Part shown: in pieces, positions 4,399-35,294 of the stretch
How the letters are laid out: each line of letters starts with the position of its first letter
Numbering within the stretch: the stretch's first letter is position 1
Origin: Tubulanus polymorphus
Taxonomy: Eukaryota; Animalia; Nemertea
Direction: 5' to 3'
NCBI RefSeq assembly: GCF_964204645.1
Contig: NC_134036.1
Location: 9,899,859 to 9,963,858, forward strand
Length of the DNA stretch: 64,000 nt
Translations under genes and position numbers: made by a program
The notes under the pieces: model-generated
What the model was told of the DNA's origin: nothing
Database searches by the model: none
The model's input: only the letters and a program-made list of their open reading frames with translations

Positions 4399-4592
4399 CT
4401 ACATCTTTTGCTTCCCGGATATGTAATTATGCACTCTCGAACGAATCTGCGCCAATGTACGTTGATTTTTAAGCTCCAAAACCAGTTTTTGGAGTTCGCT
4501 GCTTGGGGGCATTTTCTTTTCATCCACATAATGCCTTAACCTGGTGAAGAAAAGACGATTTTCTTCTTCTGACCACCTTCTCCTGACCACGC
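4399..4592 (-). CDS. Terminal exon of the element-1 YR gene, Myb/SANT-like domain
   Basis: tttag acceptor; RRRWSEEENRLF...KKMPPSSELQK...RTLAQIRSRVHN then stop; homologous to the exon at 54960-55174. Confidence 0.8.
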
Positions 4593-4687
4593 CTAAAATA
4601 TAGATTTGTGGAATGATAAAAAGTGTTCATACACATTTTTTTTCATATCGTTTATTGACTTAGTAAGAGTGTGGAGTGTGGTCGTAC

Positions 4688-7145
4688 CAATTTTAGATGA
4701 CAGCTTCTCTTTAGGTGGACCACTCGCTTTTGCTGGAGAAACGCTTGAATCTGAAAATGTGCAAAGAAACGTTTTATTACATACTATACGGGAACAACCG
4801 ATCCGATAGAGAGTTTTACAATTTGATAACCACAAGTATTTGAAGATATTAATTTCAATTTTAACATACCAGCTTCCACTAAGTTGGGTTCGTCAAATTC
4901 TGGCATAGCAGTTTTTGAACCTGAAAATGAATAAAATTTATACAACAATCAGTTAACTCAATAATAACCGTCGTCATCATGGATCTAATACAATGCAAAA
5001 AGCAGCTCAGCGGTTTGCAGTGTATTACACAAGTTGCGATGGCACAAGCGTTTTGGCCCAAGCTAAATTTCAGCACGGAACAGATAATTGCAACTTGTTC
5101 CGGAAACAACTCACTTCGCTTTATTTGAGCATTGTGTAGTATCGATCAAGTGGTTTGCGTGTGAGTGTGCTATCTAATTATGCACAGGACAAATATGACT
5201 AGGGGCGGATCCGTGACAATTTGGCCCAGGTCAAGTCGCCTCCCTGTAATAGCGGCTTTAGCCATAATTTCTGTATATTCAAAAAACTCTTCCGCGGGGT
5301 ATTCCGGAAGTATTATATGAGTTGGTAAATCTAGTCATTATTTTGCAACGGTTGTTTTAAACATATTTCCTATACCGAAATTAGGGGTTTAAAGGACTGA
5401 ATACAATATACAATTGTTTACAACAGTTAATGTCCAAGATCTTTAAGTGGCTTATTGATAAACTAGGGGTCCAGGGACACTATGCCCACTTGGGGGGTGG
5501 TTTCAAATGCTTAACAATCTAACAATTTCAATATTCAACACCCCCTGGTATCCATCGAACAAACGAACGAATGGATGGATGGACGAAAAGTGAATGCAAT
5601 AGCCCGCTGGGACTTAAGTCCCAAGTGGGCTAAAAAATCATATCTATAGGATCTACTAATGCTTGCGGGAGAATTATCACTAAATGGCCATAATACAGGT
5701 ATGTCATTTTAAAATACTGCAACAAAATTGCCAGCTTTTCATTAGAACTTTCTTCGGCCTGATATTTTCTACCTCCCTGATGAATGATAATATACATGGC
5801 ATATTTTATAGCCTTACTTTTTACTAATGGGGTCAATCATATTTAAGTGACATATACCGATTGACCAAATATCCTAGTAAATTACCAACTGTTAACAACT
5901 GATGATATCTAAGATTTATCCACACTTGTGGGGTGACTATTTATAGGTGGCTTAAATATATAAGAATAGTCACTTGTAGGTCTCATAGCATTCACAGGAT
6001 TAACCTACATGTGGGAAAGAAATATCTATTATGGCCTTTATAGCCAGACTCGATATCGGCCACAATTGTAAGTTATTAACAACTACTATTGTTTAGTATT
6101 TGGAGAGAGCATACCAATTTCAGACGACTGTTTTGAACGCTTGAATCGCTGAATGCTTGAATCTGAAAATGTACAAAGAAATGTTTTAAAACGTACTGGG
6201 AAACATATAATCAATCCGCTACACAGTCGTACAATTTGTTTGTCCACAAGTTTTTTTAACATACCAGCTTCCACGAAGTTTGGCTCTACCAATTCGGAAG
6301 TAGCAGCGTTTGAACCTGAAAATAATTATGTAAATTGACACATCAATCAGAGTTAAATTATAATTGTCAATTGATGAAAATAACAATAGTAATAATGACA
6401 ATGGTGGTTTGCAGCTAGTGCTTAGCATGGTGCACAATTTCTGCATATTCTGGGAAATCCCTAAGGGAAGTAATACTTAGGCAACTGAACCTAGTCATTT
6501 TAGGCTAGGGTTTTTTAACATATTTTCTATGCCAAGATAAGGGATTTAAAGTAAGAATGTATACAATGACCTATAAGTGACATGCACATTGTTTACAACA
6601 GCTAATGTCCAAGATTTACTTTCACTTTGCGGTGTGAACTATCTAAAGGTGGTTTAATGATTTTTAAAAACTCATATTTAGGGCCTATAGGGTTAACTTA
6701 TACTTGTGGAATGAATTTTTCATAAATAACTTTTACTTGGTAATTGATAATATTTGAGATTTACCTAGACTTGCGGGGTGAATTAATCATAATTGGTCTA
6801 TGTTGATAGGTCAATTATCTTCGAGATTTATGGGTTGTTTAAACTGATAATGCTAATTTATCTATAGTTGTAGGGTCAATTATCTGGCAATGAAGGTATT
6901 GCCCAAGAAAATTATGAGCAACATTGGGCATTGAACCATTCTAATCGAAGAAAACACTTGCAACCTTCCTCCTAGAACATAAGTCTCCATTATAAACAAT
7001 TATATCATAGAAAAATAAATCATGTACTCACAACCTGGAAGTGGATTGCTGTGCATGGTTTTTGCCAATTTGGCAGAAGGTTCACCATCCGACGAGTCAT
7101 CTGGTGCCGACCAACGATCACTGTATTGCAGAGGCATGGGAAGAG
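4688..7145 (-). CDS. Five small phase-1 linker exons of the YR gene (7145-7032, 6315-6265, 6162-6115, 4920-4870, 4750-4688)
   Basis: Each has AG/GT borders, a length divisible by 3 and an open frame; the last four form a duplicated two-exon module. Confidence 0.6.
5460..5637 (-). mobile_element. Internally deleted HINE/DINE-like element (both ends only)
   Basis: aactaggggtccagggacactatgcccacttggg at one end; (GGAT/GGAC)n plus cccgctgggacttaagtcccaagtgggctaaaaa at the other. Confidence 0.8.
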
Positions 7146-7237
7146 CTAAAAAGTCGCAAAAGTAAAAATGTATAGTATGTATGGTATGATCCATATTATG
7201 GTTAACATTCTTTAACAGTTTCGACATTGCCACTTAC

Positions 7238-10200
7238 AATCGATTTGGATCTCATCTAACGTTTTCCCTCTGAAGGACTTCAGTTGCCCATTTTCAATCG
7301 CGATCAGCAGACGGGCAACTTTGGACTTCTCTATAATCGAGCTCTGTAGCCTGTAATGGTTGATGTGAATATTGGCATCATGACCCATGTGGTCACAAAG
7401 CATCTTAAGCTCTTCGGATTTCATGTCGAGAATCTGAAAAAATTAGTTATCTGAATGTAAATATTAGTTTCATTCATGAAATATAAAGTTGTCAATGAAA
7501 GTCGTACTTGCGAAGTAGTTGCCAAATAACGCCTCAGAGCTGAACTTCTGATGGAGGTAGCATTTTGCAAGTTTGGACACAAACTTGTGATGACTCGAAA
7601 CGCTTCACATCCGTCCAACGGGGTTCTACTAAGTGGGCTCTGTCTGAAATATACAAAATTGATAGTCAGATAGTTTTTCAGTTGCAGAAATTTTGGAAAA
7701 TTGCCATTTTTGCAAATCCATTGTAGCATTTAAAAATCTTCCCAAAATAACTTGATTCTATCTAAAACGGACGCTGGAACCTAAGGCGAAAGCTGATAAG
7801 TGAGCTGAAAGTGATGTCTAAACAGAATTGAGCATAAGATTGATACACAGATGAGACATTTCATGAAAAATTTACCGCGCGAATAAATATGGATTCAACT
7901 TATTCTGATTAGTTTGAGTCAGGTACGTTATGGCATCGATCATATCATTCGTCATCAGAATGAACACCTTCCTCAGGCCTCTCGTGCTCTTCCCTCTAAC
8001 CTCGAAAAGCGACATCCTGAAAAATAATGAATATCAAAATTACTTGGTTTTCTCATTATATGTAGTGGACTTTTTTTTAACCAAATTCCAAGAATGAAAC
8101 TGAATTTGAAAAACTTCTGTTAAGTATGTAAACCTTGTTAACAAGAGGACCGTAAGGTCCATATGGTCGAAGACAGTGTTTAAAATTGACTAAATAGTAG
8201 TGATTGGATGCATGAGAAGATGTCATCAGTGACAACAAATTCATGTTTCCAGGGTTTTTCTATGAGGCTGTTTTTTTTACCGCTTAACATTTTCCCCCAG
8301 GCAAAAGTGGTCCTATTTTCCCCAAATCCTGAAAAATTCATAGAGGAATTGTGAAAATAAATTATTTGCTTTTATAATTATAGTGTTTTTATATTAGTTT
8401 ATTTGAATGTAATGATCTGTTTGAATAACAAAATGCGTGGCTGACGATGTAGTGTCATAGTAATAGCGCAGAGGCCATATCTACCTCCCCTACTAAGTAT
8501 AATCCCCCAGACAATCTTTCCTACCCTATATTCCATAATCACTAATTTTACTAGCGACGATCCCTATATGGTCTTCGACTATAAACTAGGGGTCCAGGGA
8601 CACCATGCCCGCTTGGGACGTGGTTCCAATTGCTCGACAATCTAATAATTTCAATATTCAACGCCCCCTGGTGACCATATACAAAAACCAATGAACTTGA
8701 AACTCACCACAATCATAGAAGATGTCAGCAGCTACGATTTTGTAATTCATTGTGATAACAAAATATGCCTCGTTACCAATTTAATATGGAAATACTAAGT
8801 TATTCTACTATTTAACGCCCCCTGGTGACTATATTCAAAACCCAATGACCTCAAAACTTACCACAATCATAGAACATGTCATGAACTACAACTTTGCAAT
8901 CGATCATGGTAACAAAATATGCATAGGTACCAATATAATAAGGAAATATTAAGTTATTCTACTATTCAACGCCCCCTGGTGACCATATAGAATAACTTTT
9001 GTCCTTAAAACTCGAAACAATCATAGATGATGTCATGAGCTACAACTTTCCAATTGACTGTGGTTACAAAATATGCATAGGTACTAATATAATATAGAAA
9101 TGCTAAGATATTGCATTATTCAACGCCCCATGGTGGCCATATACAAAATCCAATTACCTTGAAACTCACCACAATCATAGAACATTTTATGAGCTACAAC
9201 TTTCTAAATGATTGTGGTAACAAAATACGCTTAGGTATCAATTTAATGTGGAAAAACTTTTTCCCACTTACGAATGAGTACTGGTGACACCAAGATGGCC
9301 ACCAATTGCGTCATAATTGGCTGATGAAAAATACCTGTCTCAGGTATAAAACATCCCTTTCTAAACAATACCCATCACAAATTGCAATGAGAAATGGTAA
9401 ACCAGTAGGAACTCAGAATTCGGGCCAACATTAACATTTTTGGGTACTAAAAAGGTCATAGGACGGCCATCTTGAGTCCAATTGACCCAATTGTTGTTAT
9501 GCTGATGAACCCTGGGGAGATTCACATATATCCGAAAGATCAAGGTAATTGATCAAAGCGTCTTCGAAATTTCCCTCAAAAGTTCAAAAATGTGTAAAAA
9601 GTGCTGATTTTGGCGAACAACAATGGCTGCCAGTCGGCCATCTTGAATCTGACAGGGCCAGTTTTTGGGCTGAAGATGTGTCTAGGGTAGATACATGTGT
9701 AACCCAAATATCAAGACATTACCTTGAAGCGTCTGCAAAACTTCCCAAATTAACTGGATTCCGTGTACGGACGGACGACGGACGAAAAGTGAACGCAATA
9801 GCCCGCAGGGACTAAAGTCTCAAGTGGGCTAAAAAGAGGACTATCGCATACCTTTTAACGAGTGTTTGTTCAATGACATCCAAAGAGTTAGTGATTTCAG
9901 TATTTTCAGTCTGTTGGCATTCAACGAACTCGTGACATTTGATTTCGGCAACTTCAGAAACGCGTCTTTTATTAAACATCACGATTCTCACCAAGATCAG
10001 CTGAGCCATGAAAGTCCACTCTTTTCTGTCTGGATTAGGATTTTTCTGTCCTTCTTGTATTTCATCAACGCTCCAATTCTTTAAGGTCACAAGGTCATCC
10101 GTAAGTGGCGTGATAGATTTCGTGTTGATCTTTCGAAGACGTTTCCTCCTATTAGCAACACACGACACCATATTGTTCCAATGGGCACGGTATAAATATT

Positions 10201-10855
10201 CAAAGTCTTTTCCTTCATTTTGAATGTCAACGGAGTTAATCTTGATGCCGTAGCTAATTTTAAGAATTATGGAATGCTTAATGTAGCTTCCTAATTGGAC
10301 AGCCAGTTGTGGGGAGTCACTTTCTTCTGAAAGCGATTTAACACCTTTGACCACAGCATCGAACTCCTTTCCTGTTATATAATAGTTTAAATCATTTTTT
10401 GTTCCGGCTTGTTCATTCAATTTGATCAATAAACGGCCAATCAGACGAACTTTTGATCTGACGTTTGCGAAATCTTTTAATCTTTGCTCTTCGGAAGTTC
10501 CCAGTCTGCCTAACATGGAGAGTGCGAATTCCCGTATCAAGATATCATTCCTGACAGCTTTTGCGATGCCAGGGTTGGCAGCAGTTTCCTTCAAATTAAA
10601 GACATCGTTTACTGCAGCGATCTGCTCGTCATCCTCACTCAGGAACGGCATAACCATAAGGCGGCCGCATCTCACATAGTCCGCAGATGGCTCCTTTGAC
10701 GAAGGTTTGAGAAGACATGCCTTCATATGTTTCCATAGTGAGTTTTTTAGAAAGAGACCTTTGCCGTACTCACAAAAGATGAAGTTAGAAGGGCTCTCTA
10801 CGGACGTTGGTCTCCGATTCACTACAAGCTCACCACCATCACCACTACTTATCAC
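7238..10855 (-). CDS. Tyrosine recombinase core exons of element 1 (10855-9852, 8016-7876, 7643-7508, 7433-7238)
   Basis: The exons splice in phase and give MFNKRRVSEV (Arg I), VRGKSTR (Lys), SSALRRYLATTSQ (HxxR-equivalent) and HMGHDANIHINHYRL (His and catalytic Tyr). Confidence 0.88.
8583..9836 (-). mobile_element. Full-length Helentron-associated non-autonomous element (HINE/DINE-1-like) in a YR intron
   Basis: Minus strand: TTTTAGCCC start with hairpin, (GTCC)n microsatellite, central ~152-bp tandem repeats, subterminal inverted repeat cccacttggg/cccaagcggg, short 3' stem-loop, CTAG-TTT end. Confidence 0.8.
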
Positions 10856-11865
10856 CTGTAAGGGTGGTACAAAAAATTTACTACAATATTTGATTTGAAT
10901 GCGGAATAAAATTGAATGGGGTACGGGGACTCACTAGATGGCGCCAAGATCCACTCGATCGTTAGTTATGAAAATCAGTTCATGTTTAATGAAATTTGAA
11001 TTTTATTTTGGGCATCCAAATCCGAAAATTATCAAACAAGTATAAGGAAATAGATTTCACTAATAATTGATTTACTCAGGGAGAAAAGTTGAAGGGAATT
11101 TAATTGCAATGCATAAGAAATTGAAGCGCAGTAACCCAGTGCTACTTAACAAACTGACAGAATTCTCACTTGCCACAGTCGAGTTGCCGGTACCACATTT
11201 GATTTGATGTTTACTTGCATAACAAAATTTGATTGAATTTGGCATACAATCACATTGCTAACTAGCATATCAACGTCATCCATCCCTAGCAGTGAATTAA
11301 GAAAGATATTTTCCCGACCATTGCACAATTACCATGGACAAATTTTGCGCAGTACAAATTTACATGGTGCAAAACAAATTTGCTCCCAAAAATCAAATCA
11401 ATTTCCTAAAAATCAAATTTGAAATAAAATTCTTGGTTGTAAAATGAAAGCTGGAAGTAAAACAGTAGACGATACTGCGATACCGCGCGTTCGCGTGAAC
11501 ACCTCATATTTTCAAGAAAAAACCCTGTACGTTTTGACGGGTTCGTTTGCAAAATTTGGCCTCCTAGGATTTGGAAAGTGGATAATGCAGTAAAACATGA
11601 CTAATGAACCATCGTATTTAATTTGCTCCATTAGTATAGCAGTATGTAAAAACCTATGGCTACCCCAAAAATTACAAAAATAATAGATTTTGTGGAAGTT
11701 ATTTTGAATTAGACTATTCTGATTTGCGCTGGGTATGCCTGTATACATTTAACATTTATCAAAGAGATCTAATTAGCAAATCACATTTTTGGTAAGGGTG
11801 GTTGGGAATATATGCAAGGTGCAGAACTAGTTTTGATTTACAAACTGTCAAAGTCATTAGTATAC

Positions 11866-12096
11866 CTTAATATTATGATGGAAATTGCCCAGATTCTCGA
11901 GTTCGTACAGGCGTTTTTTTCTTCTCTGCTGATCCATTAGGTAATGACATGATTTCTTTCACTTTCTCTTCATTGTAATGGATATTACAATAATGGGGTG
12001 CAATTTTAGAAGTGAACGTATTTTTGCAATAATAGCAATGATTAACCTTTCTGTAATCCCTTTTTCCATCATTTTTTTTATAGACCGGAATGGTAA
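11866..12096 (-). CDS. Zinc-finger exon of the element-1 gene, with a 1-nt frameshift
   Basis: HCYYCKNTFTSKIAPHYCNIH aligns with YCVFCKKGIKSKISRHLLAAH of the element-2 protein. After an A7 run the +1 frame reads RLYELENLGNFHHNIK up to a GT donor. Confidence 0.8.
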
Positions 12097-12320
12097 CTGA
12101 AAATATTTCATGAGTAGAATGGACATAATATGAATTTGAAATGTACAACGAAGTGGAATATTTAGTGCCAGAGCAAGTGATTATTACAAATGTGAAATAA
12201 AAGCATTGTTAACACGTTGTCATCTGGTTATTTGGTAGCAAAGGCTTTAATGATGTAGGCTGTACTTAAGGCTCAAAGCCTGTTTAATTTATTGTATTCA
12301 ATTTATCAAAACATGCCTAC

Positions 12321-12710
<390 letters not shown>

Positions 12711-15099: not shown

Positions 15100-18000
15100 G
15101 TTCCTTGCAGGTTTGAGTACAACCAGATAATTATGGGACCCTCCTGTTTTTCAAAGGGACCTGACTTGGCAATTTCTTATTGAAAAGACTGAAAACCTGT
15201 CTAATATTTTCAAGATCCCTTCCCTAAATATACCATGACAACAACATAGGAAGTAACACTCGAAATTGAGGCCAAAAATGACTATTTTGGGCACAAACAA
15301 TGTCACAGGATGGCAATCTTGTGTCCAATATATCCAGTTTTACTCATGGGCAAACAGTTTGATGCACTGTACCGTATATCTGCTTTTCACAAATTTCAAG
15401 ACTGGTTGCAGTGGAATCACCAGGACTAAGTTTTTCGACTAGGCCTAATAGGCCGATCTGTGAGGTGAATTATCTTTTAGTCCTGGCAAACTTATACAGT
15501 AGAACTGGTGTAAGTCTGACTATTCAAAGTTGCATCCCGAATTTTTCCAGATTATTTTCCTATTAAAATCTTTTATCAAAATTGGATTCTAGAAGTCAGA
15601 AATATCAGTTCAGAAAGTTTCAAAGGGACTAGCTAATTTCAGTTCTTTTTAGAAAAGATTGTCACCGGCGTGCAGTGTCTATTATGTACCGGCAGAATGA
15701 TTTTTCTGATGACGGACAAACATGATAAGCACAATAGAAGTCCGCTATAGAAAATAGCATTGACCCTGTGTCATTAGGGTTAGGGTCTTAATCTGTAGCT
15801 TACGCATATTACTCTAAGAAAACCTCCAAAATGCGACTCATTCGTAAATAAGAATTTTTCTAATTCTGACATTTTCCGTTGTCCCTATGTGTCCCAATTG
15901 AGTCAGTTCTCTAAAACTGTTTTTAAGGTACACCTATACTTGTGGGATGAATTATATATAAGGGATATAGATCAAGCATGCAAGTGACTTGTTGGTTGTG
16001 TACAACTGATAATTTAACATTTACCAATACCTTGCGGGGTGAATTATTTATAGCCCCAGGCCTCTGTACATAAATCTCTAGTCTTTCGTGGGGTGTTTAA
16101 AACAGGCAATGCTTTGGCATGATATACCTATTGTGCCAAGAGCTCACTAGGGTGATTCCACTCTACCAAACTGAGAAGTTGACTCCATAATTTACCCATA
16201 TATCTCACTGACTTGCCGGGCTTGAAATTGAGGGAAAAAATTACTACATATGGCACAAACAATGTCACATGATAGCAATCTCGTGTCCAATACATCCAGT
16301 TTTACTCAGTTTGATGCACTGTACCATACATCTGCTTTGACAAATTTCAAGATAGGTTGCAGTGGATTCACCAGGGTCTAAGCTTTTCGACTAGGCCTAG
16401 AAGGCCAATCTGTGAGGTGAATTTTCTTTTAGTCCTAGTAAACTTAGGCCCTATACAGTAGAACTGGCGTAAGTCACACTGCTCAAAGTTGCGTCCTGAT
16501 TTTTTTTTTCAGTTCCTGATTTTTTTTAGTTCATTTTCCTATCAAAATCGGATTCTAGAAGTCAGAAATTCAACTAAGTCAGCTAAAACATCAGTTCAGA
16601 AAGTTTCAAAACAATGAATTTTTTTATCTCTAAGTCAGTTAGCTAATTTCAGTTCTTTTTACAAAAACATTGCCTCTGGTGTGTAGTGTCTATTATGTAC
16701 AGGCGGATCGATTTTTCCGTTGACGGACAAACATGTTAAGCACAATAGAAGTCCGCTATAGAAAATAGTATTGACCCCGTGCCATAAGGGTTAGGGTCTT
16801 AAATCTGTAGCTAACTCAGATTTCTCCAAGAAAACCTCTAAATGAGACTCAATCTTGAATCGAAATTTTTCTTATTCTGACATTTTCTCGTCCTTACGTG
16901 TCCGTCCGACTTACACCAGATCTCTAAAACTGTTTTAAGGTACACCTATACTTGTGGGATGAATTATTTATAAGTGAGTTAGATCAAGCATATCAGTGAC
17001 TTGTGGGCTGTGTACAACTGATAACTTAAGATTTACCAATACCTTGCGGGGTGAATTATTTATAGCCCCAGGCCTCTGTACATAAATCTCTAGTCTTTCG
17101 TAGGGTGTTTAAAACAGGCAATATTTTGGCACGATAAATACCTATTGTCCTAAGAGCACACTAGGGCGATTCCTCTCGACCAAACTGAGAAATCATCTAA
17201 TATCTAATGATGAAATTGATGGGTGCTTTTAGTTCGTTCCCTCTAACACATTCTCTGTTGAACTATGTGTGGAATATGTTCTGGGACTTAGCTCTTATTG
17301 AAAACACTGCAAATGACTGATCAGATGATCAGTGTTTTCACTAAGAGTCAAGTCCCAGACCCATTCCTAGCAGGTTTTAGTACAACCAGAAAATTATGGG
17401 ACCCTCCTGGTTTTCAAAGGGACCTGACTTGGCAATATCTTATTGAAAAGACTGAAAACCTGTCTAATATTTTCAAGATCCCTTCCCTAAATATACCATG
17501 ACAACAACATAGGAAGTAACACTCGAAATTGAGGCCAAAAATGACTATTTCGGGCACAAACAATGTCACAGGATGGCCATCTTGTGTCCAAAATATCCAG
17601 TTTTACTCATGGGCAAACAGTTTGATGCACTGTACCGTGTATCTGCTTTTCACAAATTTCAAGACTGGTTGCAGTGGAATCACCAGGACTAAGTTTTTCG
17701 ACTAGGCCTAATAGGCCGATCTGTGAGGTGAATTATCTTTTAGTCCTGGCAAACTTATACAGTAGAACTGGTGTAAGTCTGACTATTCAAAGTTGCATCC
17801 CGAATTTTTCCAGATTATTTTCCTATTAAAATCTTTTATCAAAATTGGATTCTAGAAGTCAGAAATATCAGTTCAGAAAGTTTCAAAGGGACTAGCTAAT
17901 TTCAGTTCTTTTTAGAAAAGATTGTCACCGGCGTGCAGTGTCTATTATGTACCGGCAGAATGATTTTTCTGATGACGGACAAACATGATAAGCACAATAG

Positions 18001-21000: not shown

Positions 21001-24000
21001 CACACTGCTCAAAGTTGCGTCCTGATTTTTTTTTTCAGTTCCTGATTTTTTTTAGTTCATTTTCCTATCAAAATCGGATTCTAGAAGTCAGAAATTCAAC
21101 TAAGTCAGCTAAAACATCAGTTCAGAAAGTTTCAAAACAATGAATTTTTTAATCTCTAAGTCAGTTAGCTAATTTCAGTTCTTTTTACAAAAACATTGCC
21201 TCTGGTGTGTAGTGTCTATTATGTACAGGCGGATCGATTTTTCCGTTGACGGACAAACATGTTAAGCACAATAGAAGTCCGCTATAGAAAATAGTATTGA
21301 CCCCGTGCCATAAGGGTTAGGGTCTTAAATCTGTAGCTAACTCAGATTTCTCCAAGAAAACCTCTAAATGAGACTCAATCTTGAATCGAAATTTTTCTTA
21401 TTCTGACATTTTCTCGTCCTTACGTGTCCGTCCGACTTACACCAGATCTCTAAAACTGTTTTAAGGTACACCTATACTTGTGGGATGAATTATTTATAAG
21501 TGAGTTAGATCAAGCATATCAGTGACTTGTGGGCTGTGTACAACTGATAACTTAAGATTTACCAATACCTTGCGGGGTGAATTATTTATAGCCCCAGGCC
21601 TCTGTACATAAATCTCTAGTCTTTCGTAGGGTGTTTAAAACAGGCAATATTTTGGCACGATAAATACCTATTGTCCTAAGAGCACACTAGGGCGATTCCT
21701 CTCGACCAAACTGAGAAATCATCTAATATCTAATGATGAAATTGATGGGTGCTTTTAGTTCGTTCCCTCTAACACATTCTCTGTTGAACTATGTGTGGAA
21801 TATGTTCTGGGACTTAGCTCTTATTGAAAACACTGCAAATGACTGATCAGATGATCAGTGTTTTCACTAAGAGTCAAGTCCCAGACCCATTCCTAGCAGG
21901 TTTTAGTACAACCAGAAAATTATGGGACCCTCCTGGTTTTCAAAGGGACCTGACTTGGCAATATCTTATTGAAAAGACTGAAAACCTGTCTAATATTTTC
22001 AAGATCCCTTCCCTAAATATACCATGACAACAACATAGGAAGTAACACTCGAAATTGAGGCCAAAAATGACTATTTCGGGCACAAACAATGTCACAGGAT
22101 GGCCATCTTGTGTCCAAAATATCCAGTTTTACTCATGGGCAAACAGTTTGATGCACTGTACCGTGTATCTGCTTTTCACAAATTTCAAGACTGGTTGCAG
22201 TGGAATCACCAGGACTAAGTTTTTCGACTAGGCCTAATAGGCCGATCTGTGAGGTGAATTATCTTTTAGTCCTGGCAAACTTATACAGTAGAACTGGTGT
22301 AAGTCTGACTATTCAAAGTTGCATCCCGAATTTTTCCAGATTATTTTCCTATTAAAATCTTTTATCAAAATTGGATTCTAGAAGTCAGAAATATCAGTTC
22401 AGAAAGTTTCAAAGGGACTAGCTAATTTCAGTTCTTTTTAGAAAAGATTGTCACCGGCGTGCAGTGTCTATTATGTACCGGCAGAATGATTTTTCTGATG
22501 ACGGACAAACATGATAAGCACAATAGAAGTCCGCTATAGAAAATAGCATTGACCCTGTGTCATTAGGGTTAGGGTCTTAATCTGCAGCTTACGCATATTA
22601 CTCTAAGAAAACCTCCAAAATGCGACTCATTCGTAAATAAGAATTTTTCTAATTCTGACATTTTCCGTTGTCCCTATGTGTCCCAATTGAGTCAGTTCTC
22701 TAAAACTGTTTTTAAGGTACACCTATACTTGTGGGATGAATTATATATAAGGGATATAGATCAAGCATGCAAGTGACTTGTTGGTTGTGTACAACTGATA
22801 ATTTAACATTTACCAATACCTTGCGGGGTGAATTATTTATAGCCCCAGGCCTCTGTACATAAATCTCTAGTCTTTCGTGGGGTGTTTAAAACAGGCAATG
22901 CTTTGGCATGATATACCTATTGTGCCAAGAGCTCACTAGGGTGATTCCACTCTACCAAACTGAGAAGTTGACTCCATAATTTACCCATATATCTCACTGA
23001 CTTGCCGGGCTTGAAATTGAGGGAAAAAATTACTACATATGGCACAAACAATGTCACATGATAGCAATCTTGTGTCCAATACATCCAGTTTTACTCAGTT
23101 TGATGCACTGTACCATACATCTGCTTTGACAAATTTCAAGATAGGTTGCAGTGGATTCACCAGGGTCTAAGCTTTTCGACTAGGCCTAGAAGGCCAATCT
23201 GTGAGGTGAATTTTCTTTTAGTCCTAGTAAACTTAGGCCCTATACAGTAGAACTGGCGTAAGTCACACTGCTCAAAGTTGCGTCCTGATTTTTTTTTTTC
23301 AGTTCCTGATTTTTTTTAGTTCATTTTCCTATCAAAATCTGTTAGCAAAATTTGTCTCAAAATCGGATTCTAGAAGTCAGAAATTCAACTAAGTCAGCTA
23401 AAACATCAGTTCAGAAAGTTTCAAAACAATGAATTTTTTAATCTCTAAGTCAGTTAGCTAATTTCAGTTCTTTTTACAAAAAGATTGCCACTGGTGTGTA
23501 GTGTCTATTATGTACAGGCGGATCGATTTTTCCGTTGACGGACAAACATGTTAAGCACAATAGAAGTCCGCTATAGAAAATAGTATTGACCCCGTGCCAT
23601 TAGGGTTAGGGTCTTAAATCTGTAGCTAACTCAGATTTCTCCAAAAAACCTCTAAATGAGACTCAATCTTGAATCGAAATTTTTCTTATTCTGACATTTT
23701 CTCGTCCTTACGTGTCCGTCCGACTTACACCAGATCTCTAAAACTGTTTTAAGGTACACCTATACTTGTGGGATGAATTATTTATAAGTGAGTTAGATCA
23801 AGCATATGAGTGACTTGTGGGCTGTGTACAACTGATAACTTAAGATTTACCAATACCTTGCTGGGTGAATTATTTATAGCCCCAGGCCTCTGTACATAAA
23901 TCTCTAGTCTTTCGTAGGGTGTTTAAAACAGGCAATATTTTGGCACGATAAATACCTATTGTCCTAAGAGCACACTAGGGCGATTCCTCTCGACCAAACT

Positions 24001-27000
24001 GAGAAATCATCTAATATCTAATGATGAAATTGATGGGTGCTTTTAGTTCGTTCCCTCTAACACATTCTCTGTTGAACTATGTGTGGAATATGTTCTGGGA
24101 CTTAGCTCTTATTGAAAACACTGCAAATGACTGATCAGATGATCAGTGTTTTCACTAAGAGTCAAGTCCCAGACCCATTCCTAGCAGGTTTTAGTACAAC
24201 CAGAAAATTATGGGACCCTCCTGGTTTTCAAAGGGACCTGACTTGGCAATATCTTATTGAAAAGACTGAAAACCTGTCTAATATTTTCAAGATCCCTTCC
24301 CTAAATATACCATGACAACAACATAGGAAGTAACACTCGAAATTGAGGCCAAAAATGACTATTTCGGGCACAAACAATGTCACAGGATGGCCATCTTGTG
24401 TCCAATATATCCAGTTTTACTCATGGGCAAACAGTTTGATGCACTGTACCGTGTATCTGCTTTTCACAAATTTCAAGACTGGTTGCAGTGGAATCACCAG
24501 GACTAAGTTTTTCGACTAGGCCTAATAGGCCGATCTGTGAGGTGAATTATCTTTTAGTCCTGGCAAACTTATACAGTAGAACTGGTGTAAGTCTGACTAT
24601 TCAAAGTTGCATCCCGAATTTTTCCAGATTATTTTCCTATTAAAATCTTTTATCAAAATTGGATTCTAGAAGTCAGAAATATCAGTTCAGAAAGTTTCAA
24701 AGGGACTAGCTAATTTCAGTTCTTTTTAGAAAAGATTGTCACCGGCGTGCAGTGTCTATTATGTACCGGCAGAATGATTTTTCTGATGACGGACAAACAT
24801 GATAAGCACAATAGAAGTCCGCTATAGAAAATAGCATTGACCCTGTGTCATTAGGGTTAGGGTCTTAATCTGTAGCTTACGCATATTACTCTAAGAAAAC
24901 CTCCAAAATGCGACTCATTCGTAAATAAGAATTTTTCTAATTCTGACATTTTCCGTTGTCCCTATGTGTCCCAATTGAGTCAGTTCTCTAAAACTGTTTT
25001 TAAGGTACACCTATACTTGTGGGATGAATTATATATAAGGGATATAGATCAAGCATGCAAGTGACTTGTTGGTTGTGTACAACTGATAATTTAACATTTA
25101 CCAATACCTTGCGGGGTGAATTATTTATAGCCCCAGGCCTCTGTACATAAATCTCTAGTCTTTCGTGGGGTGTTTAAAACAGGCAATGCTTTGGCATGAT
25201 ATACCTATTGTGCCAAGAGCTCACTAGGGTGATTCCACTCTACCAAACTGAGAAGTTGACTCCATAATTTACCCATATATCTCACTGACTTGCCGGGCTT
25301 GAAATTGAGGGAAAAAATTACTACATATGGCACAAACAATGTCACATGATAGCAATCTTGTGTCAAATACATCCAGTTTTACTCAGTTTGATGCACTGTA
25401 CCATACATCTGCTTTGACAAATTTCAAGATAGGTTGCAGTGGATTCACCAGGGTCTAAGCTTTTCGACTAGGCCTAGAAGGCCAATCTGTGAGGTGAATT
25501 TTCTTTTAGTCCTAGTAAACTTAGGCCCTATACAGTAGAACTGGCGTAAGTCACACTGCTCAAAGTTGCGTCCTGATTTTTTTTTTCAGTTCCTGATTTT
25601 TTTTAGTTCATTTTCCTATCAAAATCTGTTAGCAAAATTTGTCTCAAAATCGGATTCTAGAAGTCAGAAATTCAACTAAGTCAGCTAAAACATCAGTTCA
25701 GAAAGTTTCAAAACAATGAATTTTTTAATCTCTAAGTCAGTTAGCTAATTTCAGTTCTTTTTACAAAAACATTGCCTCTGGTGTGTAGTGTCTATTATGT
25801 ACAGGCGGATCGATTTTTCCGTTGACGGACAAACATGTTAAGCACAATAGAAGTCCGCTATAGAAAATAGTATTGACCCCGTGCCATTAGGGTTAGGGTC
25901 TTAAATCTGAAGCTAACTCAGATTTCTCCAAGAAAACCTCTAAATGAGACTCAATCTTGAATCGAAATTTTTCTTATTCTGACATTTTCTCGTCCTTACG
26001 TGTCCGTCCGACTTACACCAGATCTCTAAAACTGTTTTAAGGTACACCTATACTTGTGGGATGAATTATTTATAAGTGAGTTAGATCAAGCATATCAGTG
26101 ACTTGTGGGCTGTGTACAACTGATAACTTAAGATTTACCAATACCTTGCGGGGTGAATTATTTATAGCCCCAGGCCTCTGTACATAAATCTCTAGTCTTT
26201 CGTGGGGTGTTTAAAACAGGCAATACTTTGGCACGATAAATACCTATTGTCCTAAGAGCACACTAGGGCGATTCCTCTCCACCAAACTGAGAAATCATCT
26301 AATATCTAATGATGAAATTGATGGGTGCTTTTAGTTCGTTCCCTCTAACACATTCTCTGTTGAACTATGTGTGGAATATGTTCTGGGACTTAGCTCTTAT
26401 TGAAAACACTGCAAATGACTGATCAGAAGATCAGTGTTTTCAATAAGAGTCAAGTCCCAGACCCATTCCTAGCAGGTTTTAGTACAACCAGAAAATTATG
26501 GGACCCTCCTGGTTTTCAAAGGGACCTGACTTGGCAATATCTTATTGAAAAGACTGAAAACCTGTCTAATATTTTCAAGATCCCTTCCCTAAATATACCA
26601 TGACAACAACATAGGAAGTAACACTCGAAATTGAGGCCAAAAATGACTATTTTGGGCACAAACAATGTCACAGGATGGCCATCTTGTGTCCAATATATCC
26701 AGTTTTACTCATGGGCAAACAGTTTGATGCACTGTACCGTATATCTGCTTTTCACAAATTTTAAGACTGGTTGCAGTGGAATCACCAGGACTAAGTTTTT
26801 CGACTAGGCCTAATAAGCCGATCTGTGAGGTGAATTATCTTTTAGTCCTGGCAAACTTATACAGTAGAACTGGTGTAAGTCTGACTATTCAAAGTTGCAT
26901 CCCGAATTTTTCCAGATTATTTTCCTATTAAAATCTTTTATCAAAATTGGATTCTAGAAGTCAGAAATATCAGTTCAGAAAGTTTCAAAGGGACTAGCTA

Positions 27001-28808
27001 ATTTCAGTTCTTTTTAGAAAAGATTGTCACCGGCGTGCAGTGTCTATTATGTACCGGCAGAATGATTTTTCTGATGACGGACAAACATGATAAGCACAAT
27101 AGAAGTCCGCTATAGAAAATAGCATTGACCCTGTGTCATTAGGGTTAGGGTCTTAATCTGTAGCTTACGCATATTACTCTAAGAAAACCTCCAAAATGCG
27201 ACTCATTCGTAAATAAGAATTTTTCTAATTCTGACATTTTCCGTTGTCCCTATGTGTCCCAATTGAGTCAGTTCTCTAAAACTGTTTTTAAGGTACACCT
27301 ATACTTGTGGGATGAATTATATATAAGGGATATAGATCAAGCATGCAAGTGACTTGTTGGTTGTGTACAACTGATAATTTAACATTTACCAATACCTTGC
27401 GGGGTGAATTATTTATAGCCCCAGGCCTCTGTACATAAATCTCTAGTCTTTCGTGGGGTGTTTAAAACAGGCAATGCTTTGGCATGATATACCTATTGTG
27501 CCAAGAGCTCACTAGGGTGATTCCACTCTACCAAACTGAGAAGTTGACTCCATAATTTACCCATATATCTCACTGACTTGCCGGGCTTGAAATTGAGGGA
27601 AAAAATTACTACATATGGCACAAACAATGTCACATGATAGCAATCTTGTGTCCAATACATCCAGTTTTACTCAGTTTGATGCACTGTACCATACATCTGC
27701 TTTGACAAATTTCAAGATAGGTTGCAGTGGATTCACCAGGGTCTAAGCTTTTCGACTAGGCCTAGAAGGCCAATCTGTGAGGTGAATTTTCTTTTAGTCC
27801 TAGTAAACTTAGGCCCTATACAGTAGAACTGGCGTAAGTCACACTGCTCAAAGTTGCGTCCTGATTTTTTTTTTCAGTTCCTGATTTTTTTTAGTTCATT
27901 TTCCTATCAAAATCTGTTAGCAAAATTTGTCTCAAAATCGGATTCTAGAAGTCAGAAATTCAACTAAGTCAGCTAAAACATCAGTTCAGAAAGTTTCAAA
28001 ACAATGAATTTTTTAATCTCTAAGTCAGTTAGCTAATTTCAGTTCTTTTTACAAAAACATTGCCTCTGGTGTGTAGTGTCTATTATGTACAGGCGGATCG
28101 ATTCTTCCGTTGACGGACAAACTTGTTAAGCACAATAGAAGTCCCCTATAGAAAATAGTATTGACCCCGTGCCATTAGGGTTAGGGTCTTAAATCTGTAG
28201 CTAACTCAGATTTCTCCAAGAAAACCTCTAAATGAGACTCAATCTTGAATCGAAATTTTTCTTATTCTGACATTTTCTCGTCCTTACGTGTCCGTCCGAC
28301 TTACACCAGATCTCTAAAACTGTTTTAAGGTACACCTATACTTGTGGGATGAATTATTTATAAGTGAGTTAGGTCAAGCATATGAGTGACTTGTGGGCTG
28401 TGTACAACTGATAACTTAAGATTTACCAATACCTTGCGGGGTGAATTATTTATAGCCCCAGGCCTCTGTACATAAATCTCTAGTCTTTCGTGGGGTGTTT
28501 AAAACAGGCAATACTTTGGCACGATAAATACCTATTGTCCTAAGAGCACACTAGGGCGATTCCACTCGACCAAACTGAGAAATCATCTAATATCTTATGA
28601 TGAAATTGATCGGGCTTTTAGGTTGTTCCCTCTAACACATTCTTCGTTGAACCATGAGTGAAATATGTTCTGGGACGTGAATCTTATCGAAAACACTGCA
28701 AGTGACTGATCAAAAAACCTGTCTAATATGTTCAAGATCCCATCCCTAAATAAACCATGACAATACCATTAGGAAGAAACACTCGCAATTGAGGCCAAAA
28801 ATGACTAT
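15100..28808. repeat. Tandem array of six near-identical 2263/2288-bp units, each a dimer of two diverged subunits
   Basis: An identical 67-aa marker ORF recurs at 17298, 19561, 21824, 24112 and 26400 (spacing 2263, 2263, 2288, 2288). Subunits start with gaaattgagg at ~15262, 16224 and 17525. Confidence 0.97.
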
Positions 28809-28857
28809 TATATATTCCGATGACAACAGTGCAAGATTATAAAAACATTAGACCTAC

Positions 28858-31800
28858 CTTCAATAAAAGGAGCTAAAATTGTGGATGATTCATCTGAAAT
28901 ACCGATGACGGGGGATGATTTACCCGTACCACAAGCTCCAACTGGTGACAATTCATCAGCAATGCAAACGACAGAAGACAATTCATCCGTACCGCGAGCT
29001 CCGATTGGTGACGATTTATCAGTAACGCAAACGACAGACGACATATCATCTGCACTGCGAGCTCCGATCGGTGACGATTTATCACTTTCGCAAACGACAG
29101 ACGACATTTGAACGACGGACGACATTTCATCGGTTCCACGAGCTCCGATTGGTGACAATTTATCAGTAACACCAATGACAGACGATGTTTCATCCGAACC
29201 GCGAGCTCTGATCGGTGACGATTTTTCAGTTTCTCGAACGACAGACGACATTTCATCCGCACTACGAGCTCCAATTGGTGACGATTTATCAGCAACATAA
29301 ACGAAAAATGACATTTCATCCGTACCGCGAGCTCCGATTGGTGACGATTTATCAGCAATATAAACGACTAACGACTTTTCATCCGTACTGTGAACTCCGA
29401 TTAATGGCGATTTATCAGTAACACCAATGACAGACGACTTTTCATCCGGACTGTGAACTCCGATTAATGGCGATTTATCAGTAACACCAATGACAGACGA
29501 TGTTTCACCCGTACCGTAAGCTCCGATTGGTGATGATTTATCAGTAACGCAAACGACAGACGACATTTGAACGACGGACGACATTTCATCGGTTCCACGA
29601 GCTCCGATTGGTGACAATTTATCAGTAACACAAATGACAGACAATGTTTCATCCGAACTGCGAGCTCCGATCGGTGACGATTTATCAGTTTCTCGAACGA
29701 CAGATGACATTTCATCGGTTCCACGAGCTCCGACTGGTGACGATTTATCAGTAACGCAAACGACAGACGACATTTCATCTGCACCGCGAGCTCCGATCGG
29801 TGACGATTTATCACTTTTGCAAACGACAGACGGCATTCGAACGACGGACGACATTTCATCCGTACCGCAAGCTCCGACTGATGACGATTCATCAGTAACA
29901 CAAACGACAGACGACATTTCATCCGTACCACAAGCTCCGATTGATGACGATTTATCAGTTTCGCAAACGACAGACGACATTCGAACGACGGATGACATTT
30001 CATCCGTACCGCGAGCTCCAGTTGGTGACGATTTATCAGTTTCACAAACGACAGACGACATTTCATCCGTACCGCAAGCTCCGATTGATGACGATTTATC
30101 AGTTTCGCAAACAACAGACGACATTCGAACGACGGACGACATTTCATCCGTACCGCGAGCTCCGATTGGTGACGATTTATCAGTTTCGCAAATGACAGAC
30201 AACATTTCATCGGTTCCACGATCTCTGACTGGTGACGATTTATCACTTTCACAAACGACAGACGACATTCGAACGACGGACGACATTTCATCCTTGCCGC
30301 GAGCTCCGGTCGGTGACGATTCATCAGTAACACAAACGACAGATGACATTTCATCCGCACTGCGAGCTCCGATTGGTGACGATTTATCAGTTTCGCAAAC
30401 GACAGACAACATTTCATCCGTACCGCAAGCTCCGACTGATGACGATTTATCAGTAACGCAAACGACAAACGATATTTCATCCGCACTGCGAGCTCCAATT
30501 GGTGACGATTTATCACTTTCGCAAACGACAGACGACATTCGAACGACGGACGACATTTCATCCAAACTGCGAGCTCCGATCGGTGATGATTCATCAGTAA
30601 CACAAACGACAGACGACATTTCATCCGCACTGCGAGCTCCAATTGGTGACGATTTATCAGTTTCGCAAACGACAGACGACATTTCATCCGTACCGCAAGC
30701 TCCGATTGATGACGATTTATCAGTTTCGCAAACGACAGACGACATTCGAACGACGGACAACATTTCATCCGTACCGCGAGCTTCAGTTGGTGACGATTTA
30801 TCAGTTTCACAAACGACAGACGACATTTCATCCGTACCGCAAGCTCCGATTGATGACGATTTATCAGTTTCGCAAACGACAGACGACATTCGAACGACGG
30901 ACGACATTTCATCCGTACCGCGAGCTCCGATTGGTGACGATTTATCAGTTTCGCAAATGACAGACAACATTTCATCGGTTCCACGATCTCCAACTGGTGA
31001 CGATTTATCACTTTCGCAAACGACAGACGACATTCGAACGACGGACGACATTTCATCCGTACCGCGAGCTCCGATTGGTGACGATTTATCAGTTTCGCAA
31101 ATGACAGACAACATTTCATCGGTTCCACGATCTCCGACTGGTGACAATTTATCAGTTTCGCAAACGACAGACAACATTTCATCGGTTCCACGATCTCCGA
31201 ATGGTGACGATTTATCACTTTCGCAAACGACAGACGACATTCGAACGACGGACGACATTTCATCCATACTGCAAGCTCCGATCGGTGACGATTTTTCAGT
31301 TTCGCAAACGACAGACGACATTTCATCCGCACTTCGAGCTCCAATTGGTGACGATTTATCAGCAACATAAACGACAAACGACATTTCATCCGTACCGCGA
31401 GCTCCAATTGGTGACGATTTATCAGCAATATAAACCACTAACGACTTTTCATCCGTACTGTGAACTCCGATTAATGGCGATTTATCAGTAACACCAATGA
31501 CAGAAGACAATTCATCCATACCGCGAGCCCCGATCGGTGACGATTTATCAGTAACGGAAACGACAGACGACATTTCACCCGTACCGCGAGCTCTGATTGG
31601 TGAGGATTCATCAGTAACGCAAACGACAGATGACATTTGAACGACGGACGACATTTCATCCGTACCGCGAGCTCCGATCGGTGACGATTTATCAGTAACA
31701 CAGACGACAGATGACATTTCATCCGTACCGCGAGCTCCGATCGGTGACGATTTATCAGTAACACAAACGACAGACGACATTTCATCCGTACTGCGAGCTC

Positions 31801-32136
31801 CAATTGGTGACGATTTATCAGTAACACAAACGACAGATGACATATCATCGGTTCCACGAGCTCCGATTGGTGACGATTCATCAGTAACACAAATGACAGA
31901 TGACATTCGAACGACGGACGACATTTCATCCGTACCGCGAGCTCCGATTGGTGACGACTCATCAGTAACACAAATGACAGATGACATTCGAACGACGGAC
32001 GACATTTCATCCGTACCGCGAGCTCCGATTGGTGATGATTTATCAGTAACGCAAACGACAGACGACATTTCATCCGTACTGCAAGCTCCAATTGGTGACG
32101 ATTTATCAGCAATATAAACGACAGATGATGATTTAT
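28858..32136 (-). CDS. Giant 3279-nt exon of 63/81-bp tandem repeats (DKSSPIGARGTDEMSSVV[RMSSVV]CVT)
   Basis: ttgcag acceptor and gtagg donor, phase 1-1; open throughout despite divergence between units; same strand as the flanking SET and YR exons. Confidence 0.72.
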
Positions 32137-32983
32137 CTGCAATGGAAATGAATTGTCAGCAGTGAATATTTGACTAATTTTTGTTGAGGTGAATCATGTC
32201 TTTTGTACCTAACAGTTACAATTACTAATAATGTTGAAAAGATGCAACCCTGAAATTTATGGCGTGTCTGGATGGATGGGTGCTTGTATAATATATGTAT
32301 TTCACATTATTACAAAAGTATATTACGCCATATTTCATATGAACATTCAATAGTCTTACTTCCCATCCAATTTAAAATGACACCTTTTAGCATTTATGCC
32401 CTTATCTATACACGTAGCCTATATAAGAGTAACAAATAATATGAGTGAAAACTTCAAATTTAAATAGGACCTGGTGGGATACAAAGCTCATATGGAGATA
32501 TTTTTCTAGCATAAGATATCAGCTTGAGGGAGAAATTATGCTCTTTTGGTCAGAACTTTCAGACTAATATTTGAGTGGTGAACTAATAGCAGCATATAGT
32601 CAAACAAATAATACATTTAAGATTTGCCTACTTGCGGGGTAAATCAATATCAATTAAGTAGCCTACATAGATCAAGCATACGTAAGTTACTTGTGAGTTT
32701 TTTTACAACTGCAAGTGTATAAGATTTACTTATACCTTGCGGGGTGAATTATTCATAAGTGGCCTATAATCCTATGGCCAAGTCAAAAAGTGACTTGTGG
32801 GTTGTTAACAACATAATTACACCTGATTAATAACATAAAGTTAATCAGATTTAACTATACCCATGGACTGAATCATTTATGAATTGATAGTGTTTAAGCA
32901 AGTATACCCCACTCTTTCAGAAGGATGTATTCTCGTTGAAGTTTATGTTTAAACATTCTGAATCTAAAACATATATGATTTAC

Positions 32984-33052
32984 CTTCTATACCAAGATTC
33001 TTGGGCATGGATGATCCTTCATTGATGCAAGCTTCAACCACGGATGAATTAT
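32984..33052 (-). CDS. Possible small exon (NSSVVEACINEGSSMPKNLGIE) resembling one repeat unit
   Basis: ttatag acceptor, gtaaa donor, 69 nt, phase 1-1. Confidence 0.45.
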
Positions 33053-33975
33053 CTATAACAGAAACAATTCAATGGACAAAGGATAAAAAATATTTCATAC
33101 ACATTCCACAATCATAGAAATATGTGTTTGTAGGCTACTCCACTGTTTTACTCTTTTCAAATGCTTTTGAACAACTTAAAGTACGAACCCCCAAGGATGA
33201 ACTCCATAACACGCTTTAAGGGACATACACTATAAATTTCATATTGAAATACACTCTAATAATTAATAATGAAAAGATTGAGGTTCAAACTAGTGTATTG
33301 AATGAAACTTCAATCCATCTGTAGGTATCACTGGAGTGAGCATCTATCATCCATGCAGTCTGAATGAAATGTGCTGTTACAACATGTAGCTTATTTACAG
33401 TTACAGATAGAGTATGTCCCCTTTTTGCAAAACAATAAGCAAACTAAACTTACAACAAATTACAGACCTCTCTCGGGTCATATCATCAATCAGATCATCA
33501 TAGAAATATAATTCTCTAGCAAACCATATCATTGCTGAGCTCACTGAGGCCATATCATAAATATAGTAAGAGACTACCAGTAGTTAATTAAGAGCCCCTT
33601 TTTAAGTCTGCTGAAGTCTGATTTAACCTAAAACACAATGAAACAATTTTGGCCTAGTGATAGGCCTACAAATGTAGCCTAATATGCATCGTTATTTATT
33701 TTCAAATTATAACTGGTGAAAATTGATCAGGATTGGATGGATAATTTTTTAAAATCAGACATATAGTTGACATAAAAAATTATACATTTGTATCAAAATT
33801 TGAGATACGCTGATCGGACTTAAGCAGGCTCTATCTTGGGTTCAAATGCAATACGTTATTCATTACGTTAATTACCTAGCTGTATATTCATTTCCTGAGA
33901 AAGAAAATTTATCTGATTATATGATGGAATCAGTACTCAATAGAAAACATGTGTTAAAATCCATGACCAACTTAC

Positions 33976-35294
33976 ATTCTTTTCCCAAGGATAACTATCC
34001 AAGCCATAATCATACAACAATTCTTGATGTTTTTTCAAATCCTTCGTAGCAAATAAAGCAAGAAAAGGTTTGCCATCATCAGTCTCCAATACCTTCATCT
34101 TCGAATTGATTTGTTTCTTATCACCATGATTAATGAGCCTCCCAAGAATAGGCCCATCAACTGGCTCATCGGAAGCGTCAATGCTATTTAAGTATAAAGA
34201 ATAGCAGTTTCGAAAATGATGAAAAACTGAATGCCTAAGTCTGCTCTCAGAGTTTGATGAAATTGAAATAGATTTACAGCTTTAAAAGAAGTTCTTCAAA
34301 AAAGTCTGCCCCAAAATGAAGTTATTGATAAACTTTGACATGCCCATCATACGGCAAGTTACCAGTGCAAAGGCAATAATCCTATTTACAATTGTCAGCA
34401 TTAATCAATACACCTATGAGCATTATAGATAAGGCCTACACATTTTTAAGGATTTTTCACATAGGCCTAAAGGTAAAATATGTTTCTTACCAAAACTTTT
34501 TTCCCTTCCATTGAAAAAAAAATCGGAAGCCAGATGACAATAGGTCTTCTCTGATGGAGCCCACATTCTCAGACACAAGATCCCCGACATAATTTAGAAG
34601 GAAATCACCACATTTTCGCTCTTGAACTGTAACAACTCCCCTTCCTGAAATAAGTGAATATCACATTGTAGCATCAGTTATAATTTTTGATATGACACTA
34701 CTTTTAATTAGAGAAGGGACATAGGACATACATCTTCAATTGGTGAAATATATGAAGAACATCAGATAATATAAGTATTATTCAGAAACAAATCGGCATG
34801 GTTGCGAGAACAACAAGGGGCCTAGGGACACCATGCCCACTTGATGAAATGTCACATTCAATATTCAACACCCTGGTGAATTAATCATGGTTCACTAGGC
34901 AGCCATCTGATACCCGATCGACCCAAATTTCTCATGATGATGGGCCACATGGGTACACCAAACCATCTTCAAAATTTCCTGTCGCAAGACGGACGTACGG
35001 TATGCCCTTCCAGGTGTAGATCGCAATACCTGGCTTACAAATACAATGGGTATCCACCTACCTTTTCCTTCAAATTGCTCAATACAGAATCCAGGTGGAT
35101 CACAGTTCTCAAAGAAATATTTCACTGCCATCTTCTGGGGATTCACTCGCTGTGAAAAAAATGAAATCATCTGCAATGCTGCTATAGAGCAGGCCTCACT
35201 TTTGTGTTAAGTAAAGGCTAAAGCCAACCAAAAAGCACTGATCTCTTAGCCTACTTAGTAGAGGCTAACATACCTTATTTTTCCTTACATCCAT
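33976..35294 (-). CDS. SET-domain (KMT5A/PR-Set7-like) exons: 35294-35274, 35149-35062, 34644-34491, 34183-33976
   Basis: Spliced translation MDVRKNK-RVNPQK...EGKGRGVVT...GDFLLNYVGDL...FRFFFQWKGKKFCIDAS...LGRLINHG...ELLYDYG..YPW contains the canonical SET motifs; all phases are compatible. Confidence 0.9.

Follow-up and report, generated by a model that had tools for sequence, protein, structure and literature searches.

The window analysed here, a 64,000-nucleotide stretch of the nemertean Tubulanus polymorphus (C12:9899859-9963858, in an assembly of 268 Mb), contains a copy of a giant DNA transposon of Crypton-like type, now decayed and here called element 1. The recognisable parts of its gene all lie on the minus strand and follow one another in the order SET exons, mini-exon, repeat exon, acidic exon, zinc-finger exon, tyrosine recombinase (YR) exons and a final exon with weak Myb/SANT likeness (Table 1). 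Searches with this window model were all made one exon at a time, and the parts present in element 1 far exceed what chance would lead one to expect. A preliminary description of this DNA had proposed that the SET domain, a giant repeat, the zinc finger, the YR and a Myb domain make up one protein.

The limits of element 1 were set from its termini, which are related to those of a sister family in the same genome, and from the (TA)n arrays found on both sides. Its 5' terminus, (TA)n/CTCTTATATG...GGGGTGG (slashes mark boundaries), begins with CT as in the sister family, and its 3' terminus, CCCCGTAAAAGCATAGTTTTCAG/(TA)n, runs through CCCCGT..TTTTCAG into the array. The sister family consists of five copies, on C1, C2, C6, C7 (12,043,900-12,067,960) and C12, that differ by less than 1% over 24 kb and have unrelated outer flanks; its protein is 49% identical to that of element 1. 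All five copies have the same ends, (TA)n/CTAAGATAATG...GTTTTCAG/(TA)n, i.e., (TA)n/CT...TTTTCAG/(TA)n, with CTAAGATAATGTACG as the 5' terminus after the array. This family is mobile and multi-copy, has precise ends and carries the YR as its transposition enzyme. Given that the recombinase exon of element 1 has 29 matches genome-wide, and given the five near-identical copies, the unrelated flanks and the (TA)n ends, the locus in the window is a transposon and not a host gene. The two flanking microsatellites of element 1 are built as the same composite, with the order of their parts kept, which resembles a target duplication or an array borne by the element.

Table 1. Element 1 and its parts, in window coordinates (slashes mark splice junctions; TRF, Tandem Repeats Finder).
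Feature	Coordinates	Strand	Details
Element 1	2458-44054	minus	~41.6 kb; decayed tyrosine-recombinase transposon of a type that inserts into (TA)n; termini like those of the five-copy sister family
Microsatellite, 5' flank	44055-44335		(TA)n(TACA)n(TA)n; TRF and sequence
Nested MULE	36417-42867	plus	FAR1/ZSWIM3 N-terminal domain, MULE DDE, SWIM, PHD; within element 1, towards its 5' end
SET exon E1	35062-35170	minus	in-frame ATG at 35170 or 35131; ends ..FEGKG; donor AAAG/GTAGGT, phase 1
SET exon E2	34491-34644	minus	acceptor TTATTTCAG/; starts RGVVTVQERKCGDFLLNYVGDL; RGVVTVQ..NYVGDL..; phase 2 donor
SET exon E3	33976-34183	minus	IDAS..GRLINHG..ELLYDYG..PWEKN; donor AAT/GTAAGT, phase 0
Mini-exon	32993-33052	minus	60 nt (DNSSVVEACINEGSSMPKNL); phase 1-1; built like the sister family's 66-nt mini-exons
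Giant repeat exon	28858-32136	minus	3279 nt, 1093 codons; 21- and 27-residue units; phase 1-1
Macrosatellite	15101-28712		about six units of 2263-2288 bp, >98% alike; in the intron between repeat and acidic exons
Acidic (poly-Asp) exon	12321-12710	minus	phase 1-1
Zinc-finger exon	11866-12096	minus	C-x2-C-x10-H-x4-H, then ..NLGNFHHNIK
Large YR N-part exon	~9845-10855	minus	second zinc finger, helical domain and, within FNKRRVSEV, the putative first catalytic Arg; lower bound 9845 approximate
Four YR catalytic exons	~8027-7875, ~7660-7490, 7439-7239, 7146-7075	minus	RGKSTR, LRRYLAT, GHDANIHINHY; aligned exon by exon to the NCBI model P0160
Myb/SANT-like last exon	4402-4590	minus	RRRWSEEENRLF...IRSRVHNYISGKQKM, then stop; aligns to P0160
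Microsatellite, 3' flank	2138-2457		(TA)n(TACA)n(TA)n; TRF

At the upstream end of the gene, E1, E2 and E3 read across their junctions as GKG/RGVV, ..KKF(C)IDAS.., GRLINHG and ELLYDYG..PWEKN. The preliminary description had assembled the SET domain from four exons. The spliced SET motifs, their strand and their place upstream of the YR stand, but three exons suffice and the fourth, reaching to 35294, is unneeded; the phase 0 donor that it had placed at 33976 is that of E3. On its own, E3 matches the Pfam SET family (E 5.6e-7), and its best relative of solved structure is KMT5A/SET8 (E 4.2e-7; PDB 5teg, 1zkk), in line with the resemblance to KMT5A/PR-Set7 pointed out earlier. The SET of a related frog transposon matches the KMT5A structure with an E-value of 4.6e-25, and E2 can be aligned with the SET domains of frog, newt and carp proteins. 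By these matches, the module is KMT5A-like. A protein search with E3 by itself gave no candidates, under limits of length and word size that take away its weight. Element 1 keeps the GxG motif, the Tyr of ..NYVGDL.., the NH and the ELLYDYG. In the intron after E1, the frame that stays open past the donor (34898-35060, minus strand) has a weak match to reverse transcriptase/RNaseH (E 0.016), which may be a retrotransposon fragment.

The giant repeat claimed in the preliminary description is borne out as an open exon. Its units are 63 and 81 bp long (TRF), its acceptor and donor are consensus sites in phase 1, and 3264 nt are free of stops; mismatches between units fall 138, 97 and 178 times on codon positions 1, 2 and 3, respectively (p 6e-6). 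Because all 1093 codons are open, the splice sites are in phase 1 and the third codon position is the most variable, the repeat behaves as coding sequence. Each junction checked between the exon at 33052 and the acceptor of the zinc-finger exon proved to be in phase 1. In the sister family, the corresponding region is a row of about 13 tandem units of 162 bp (L033:3592-5658, i.e., C7:12,053,592-12,055,658, minus strand), in each of which a 66-nt exon, phase 1-1 and flanked by perfect splice signals, is combined with a 96-nt intron; diverged units, with exons of 72, 60 and 63 nt, retain both splice sites and frame. The NCBI model of this family takes just four of the units and starts within an intron part.

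The exons downstream of the repeat, from the zinc finger on, can be aligned to P0160, the NCBI T. polymorphus model of a sister element, which has Pfam matches to Phage_integrase and OTU. The zinc finger and the YR lie downstream of SET on the same strand, as had been described. The zinc-finger motif is almost invariant across the family. The YR N-part exon has 1692 homologs and is 47% identical to P0160, a protein whose own homolog search returned no model for the window gene. Pfam PF00589 (Phage_integrase) scores 29 bits on P0160 and on P0001, both of the sister family, against a cut-off of 27.1, and 20.5 bits, under that cut-off, on the Dreissena protein P0173; the catalytic exons of element 1 are singly too short for Pfam and are 34-57% identical to the PF00589 region of P0160. 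These alignments identify the enzyme as a predicted tyrosine recombinase of the Phage_integrase superfamily. Its candidate catalytic residues, read from the alignment, are FNKRR(V)SEV, RGKSTR, S..LRR and GHD...H..HY, in which another residue seems to stand where H-x-x-R normally has its His. The last exon is kept in nemertean, mollusc, frog and fish proteins; its identity as Myb/SANT is weak, since the Pfam Myb matches are below cut-offs (E 0.0025 for the sister exon, and 0.011) and a profile of eight homologs has mostly Myb/SANT structures among its top matches, but with E-values of only 0.05-0.6.

SET and YR travel together within the genome. Each of the five sister copies has SET on the strand of the YR, 9.5-10.3 kb upstream of it, and the same arrangement is found in element 1, in the window's second element and at C2:9.61 Mb. 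For the second element, the preliminary description had proposed looking for SET upstream of its gene; in coordinates that continue those of the window, its recombinase is at 61741-64446 and its SET exons are at 77809-77636 and 76029-75829, on the same strand. Its repeat, about 10 kb of 51-bp Cys-rich units (MVESCQLPAVTACKDSR), belongs to the stretch that covers window 61741-64000 and goes on to ~73591 in L036. One peptide reading of this array is open in five pieces of differing frame, the last of which shares its frame with the zinc finger and the recombinase, and the codon-position test on it gave a mixed result. A diverged SET copy at C12:8.47 Mb (L015) was set aside as evidence, as it is a fragment whose flank is conserved to much the same degree as its exon (5.7% vs 9.3% differences). 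The sister family also encodes an OTU cysteine-protease domain (GDGNCLF; Pfam 6.9e-6; L005:1513-3744, minus strand), in the same 744-residue exon as its zinc fingers and YR N-part; element 1 does not have it. A common dispersed element with internal tandem repeats of 152-154 bp sits in introns of both transposon families (window 8655-9258, 50968-51516, 58147-58594 and 59306-59606; L033/L024, c7 18700-20680).

The pairing extends to other animals. Among 33 long YR homologs, seven carry SET, and in the NCBI models of poison frogs, newt, gibel carp, Onychostoma, syngnathids and Eleginops the SET is N-terminal of the YR. At least eight vertebrate species have such fused models. The preliminary description had suggested a search for this architecture in other metazoans and had tied its proposal to the existence of fused homologs; frogs, newt and several fishes supply them. 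A frog model of 950 residues is colinear with element 1: after SET come a 4-kb intron, a 117-nt exon, a 1.9-kb exon with zinc fingers and recombinase, and the Myb exons. At two frog loci the SET introns match those of element 1 in position and phase (KG/RG in phase 1, W/C/IDAS in phase 2, PWREK/ in phase 0). L039 and L042, two ENA metagenome contigs of separate assemblies, each have the C-terminal part of SET, peptide repeats, zinc finger and YR N-part in one unbroken open reading frame (ORF). Taken together as sequences, these cases indicate that the fused SET-YR architecture is real for the family. The association also looks old, because SET-linked rows of a tree of the YR N-part are spread over all three of its main clades.

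Element 1 itself is a damaged copy. A second copy at C12:11.13 Mb, 99% identical but rearranged, shares the segment up to window position 44076. Against it, the zinc-finger exon of element 1 shows a one-base frameshift (A7 at 11914-11920, where the second copy has an in-frame A6) that precedes the conserved NLGNFHHN motif and runs into a stop at 11876, and the YR N-part exon has Gly for an invariant zinc-ligand Cys (10763-10765). As a consequence of the frameshift and the lost Cys, element 1 as assembled cannot yield the full protein; the second copy carries a stop codon of its own. The length of element 1 is explained by the nested MULE, the macrosatellite and short repeat-element insertions in introns. 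The macrosatellite, 13.6 kb long, is represented in the second copy by part of one unit only, and the MULE (Pfam MULE 2.2e-18, ZSWIM1-3 5e-32, PHD 8e-7) is missing from it. The MULE includes a 54-bp tandem repeat at 40549-40870 and is young.

These lesions bear directly on the idea that element 1 today encodes an intact protein running from SET through repeat, zinc finger and YR to Myb. All the exons are there, colinear and on one strand, and the model is phase-coherent from the exon at 33052 to the Myb exon. However, the frameshift with its stop, the substituted zinc ligand, the nested MULE, the 13.6-kb macrosatellite within an intron and a missing link to SET all oppose it, as does a possible RNA run without reads from the region, and we regard an intact product of this copy as very improbable. 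The same holds for SET being joined to the YR in one protein of element 1, for which we see hardly any likelihood. Still further from credible is that the SET is that of a normal KMT5A-like host gene with a recombinase element as its chance neighbour, or that the entire unit has been domesticated by the host. The nearness of SET to KMT5A and the many introns would suit such a gene, but five near-identical mobile copies and several diverged families all have SET on the strand of the YR and upstream of it, the copies bear inactivating lesions and vertebrates have the same pairing; we would be very surprised if this were the explanation.

More serious is the question of whether intact members of the family make one product or two. 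We think that the SET exons are probably transcribed with the transposase and add to its N-terminus a module that is optional; several observations weigh against this. The donor of E3 is in phase 0 and all recognisable downstream exons are phase 1-1, in element 1 as in the five-copy family, where the E3 donor is CAG/GTAAAT; E3 at C2:9.61 Mb, as read from the ORF translation, ends in a phase 0 donor too. In the second element the mismatch is reversed, with a best donor in phase 1 and a best acceptor of the repeat ORF in phase 0. The preliminary description had itself conceded that it found no phase 0-to-1 exon between 33976 and 33052. A splice-site scan for such a linker gave only two weak and mutually unrelated candidates (c7 17358-17328 and window 33894-33876), neither of them credible, and blastp with short ORFs across the SET-to-repeat intervals of three families gave nothing over noise. 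Splicing E3 of the sister family directly to the mini-exon would yield IMY and then a stop, i.e., a SET-only protein of KMT5A size. The NCBI models of the sister family (P0001, P0160 and P0161) start downstream and have no SET; a frog isoform of 793 residues is without it as well, and so are the annotations of mollusc and Lineus relatives. A search of sequencing runs with window 32126-36500 gave three from DNA and one, of 2015, that may be from RNA; this last run, whose RNA label is presumptive, had no reads on that interval or on L033:2901-8900, the SET-to-repeat interval of the sister family. In JGI metagenome contigs with a related copy (~89% identical protein), 5.4 kb that include LINE-like (long interspersed nuclear element) sequence separate the SET and YR ORFs, and it is possible that the single ORF of L039 and L042 arose by collapse of short-read assemblies across a shared repeat. 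In these JGI contigs (L040:3353-4837 and 9869-12628) the ORF with the C-terminal part of SET and the repeat ends in a zf-DBF-like tail, apart from the ORF with repeat, zinc finger and YR; the related ENA contigs are without the insert.

The phase mismatch without a linker exon, the early stop and the models that have no SET are what one would expect if SET were a separate small gene or cistron of KMT5A size, carried as cargo, and the transposase with repeat, zinc finger, YR and Myb were made from its own downstream start. Yet the phase 0 donor just after SET is kept from nemerteans to frogs, and the frog model splices it into the YR exons; a terminal SET exon would have no need of it. The fused vertebrate models and the single-ORF contigs also speak for a joint product, and the 5' ends of the NCBI models within the repeat array look truncated, since the model starts inside the intron of a repeat unit. 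We therefore consider two separate products rather doubtful, if a genuine contender, and prefer to see the SET exons as an optional part of the transposase unit. That SET and YR are joined in one protein in intact members of the family in T. polymorphus has, in our view, about an even chance. Of the single protein first proposed for the window, the order, the strand, the phase coherence from 33052 on and the fusion, seen elsewhere, are retained, and its link to SET in this broken copy is not supported.

The family can be pictured as follows. A tyrosine recombinase is its mover, and we infer that the element is excised as a circle and recombined into (TA)n microsatellites, leaving (TA)n/CT....TTTTCAG/(TA)n. 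What it carries, in a single orientation, is a 5' KMT5A-type SET, phase 1-1 repeat exons, an acidic stretch, two zinc fingers, the YR and a Myb/SANT-like tail, with the acidic stretch in all families and an OTU protease domain in one. If the SET exons belong to the transposase unit, both SET-plus and SET-minus isoforms would be produced, as in the frog models, by way of a SET-to-repeat splice that in T. polymorphus is a supposition. The SET could tether the recombinase to chromatin through the H4 tail, or methylate it, at the element or at the target; the preliminary description had suggested that it might mark target sites or help to evade silencing. On this last point most members of the family are discouraging: they have ..VND.. 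at the position of the KMT5A NH, and because of this ND the enzyme activity of the transposon SETs is uncertain.

At its widest, the evidence would be compatible with an ancient, animal-wide superfamily of giant YR transposons whose transposase is natively fused to a KMT5A-type SET, as its own H4K20 writer or as an H4-tail tether for (TA)n sites, and which has been active very recently, perhaps still, in T. polymorphus. We offer this full reading tentatively, as one that falls a little short of even likelihood. Fusions of transposases with chromatin modules are rare, chromovirus chromodomains and the one-off SETMAR being examples. A KMT5A-like SET kept in a recombinase family from nemerteans to frogs and fishes lets one ask whether H4 methylation or H4-tail binding takes part in targeting or in the element's own chromatin, and five near-identical 24-kb copies with exact (TA)n/CT...CAG/(TA)n ends make a workable system. 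The family would also show, in an animal, that a tyrosine-recombinase transposon can be very large and can target microsatellites, and its tandem symmetric exon-plus-intron units are an unusual route to a repeat protein. No description of a SET-bearing tyrosine-recombinase element was found in the searchable literature.

Among known systems, Cryptons are the closest in kind. They too are eukaryotic DNA transposons with a tyrosine recombinase as the only recombinase. In both, the gene contains introns, the element ends in direct repeats and the protein has a DNA-binding domain at its C-terminus; some members add a protease domain (C48 in Cryptons, OTU here). Neither a reverse transcriptase gene nor long terminal repeats appear in the ORF and repeat listings here, including those of the 24-kb element, which were read without a dedicated reverse-transcriptase profile scan; the one trace is the weak fragment in the SET intron of element 1. 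Cryptons are usually a few kb long, whereas these elements measure 24-42 kb and are inserted in (TA)n arrays, and they add a KMT5A-like SET, tandem symmetric mini-exons, two zinc fingers and a Myb/SANT-like tail. Their recombinase matches Pfam Phage_integrase and not DUF3504: eight full-length proteins gave no match to DUF3504 or GCR1_C at E-values up to 0.1, and hence none to the Crypton groups F, S, A and I through these domains. One distant homolog has MYM-type fingers. In the account by Kojima and Jurka (2011, PMC3212892), Cryptons have terminal direct repeats of 5-6 bp and a YR with or without GCR1_C or C48, and a SET domain goes unmentioned.

The Starships are giant as well, with a tyrosine recombinase at one end and cargo; they are fungal elements of tens to hundreds of kb in which the captain, a DUF3435 YR, is at the 5' end (PMC10104507). 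The present elements differ in their animal hosts, in the YR family, in having the YR at the 3' end and in a bulk made of repeats rather than cargo genes. With KMT5A/PR-Set7/SET8, the H4K20 monomethyltransferase, the SET shares the best match of solved structure and, in element 1, the GxG, Tyr, NH and ELLYDYG signatures; it differs in being part of a multi-copy transposon and in the ND that replaces NH in most members. SETMAR, a primate SET fused to a mariner (DDE) transposase by a single host-gene capture, likewise combines SET and transposase in one protein. Here, in contrast, the SET is part of the mobile element, a tyrosine recombinase takes the place of the DDE enzyme, and SET and YR are paired in many animal lineages.

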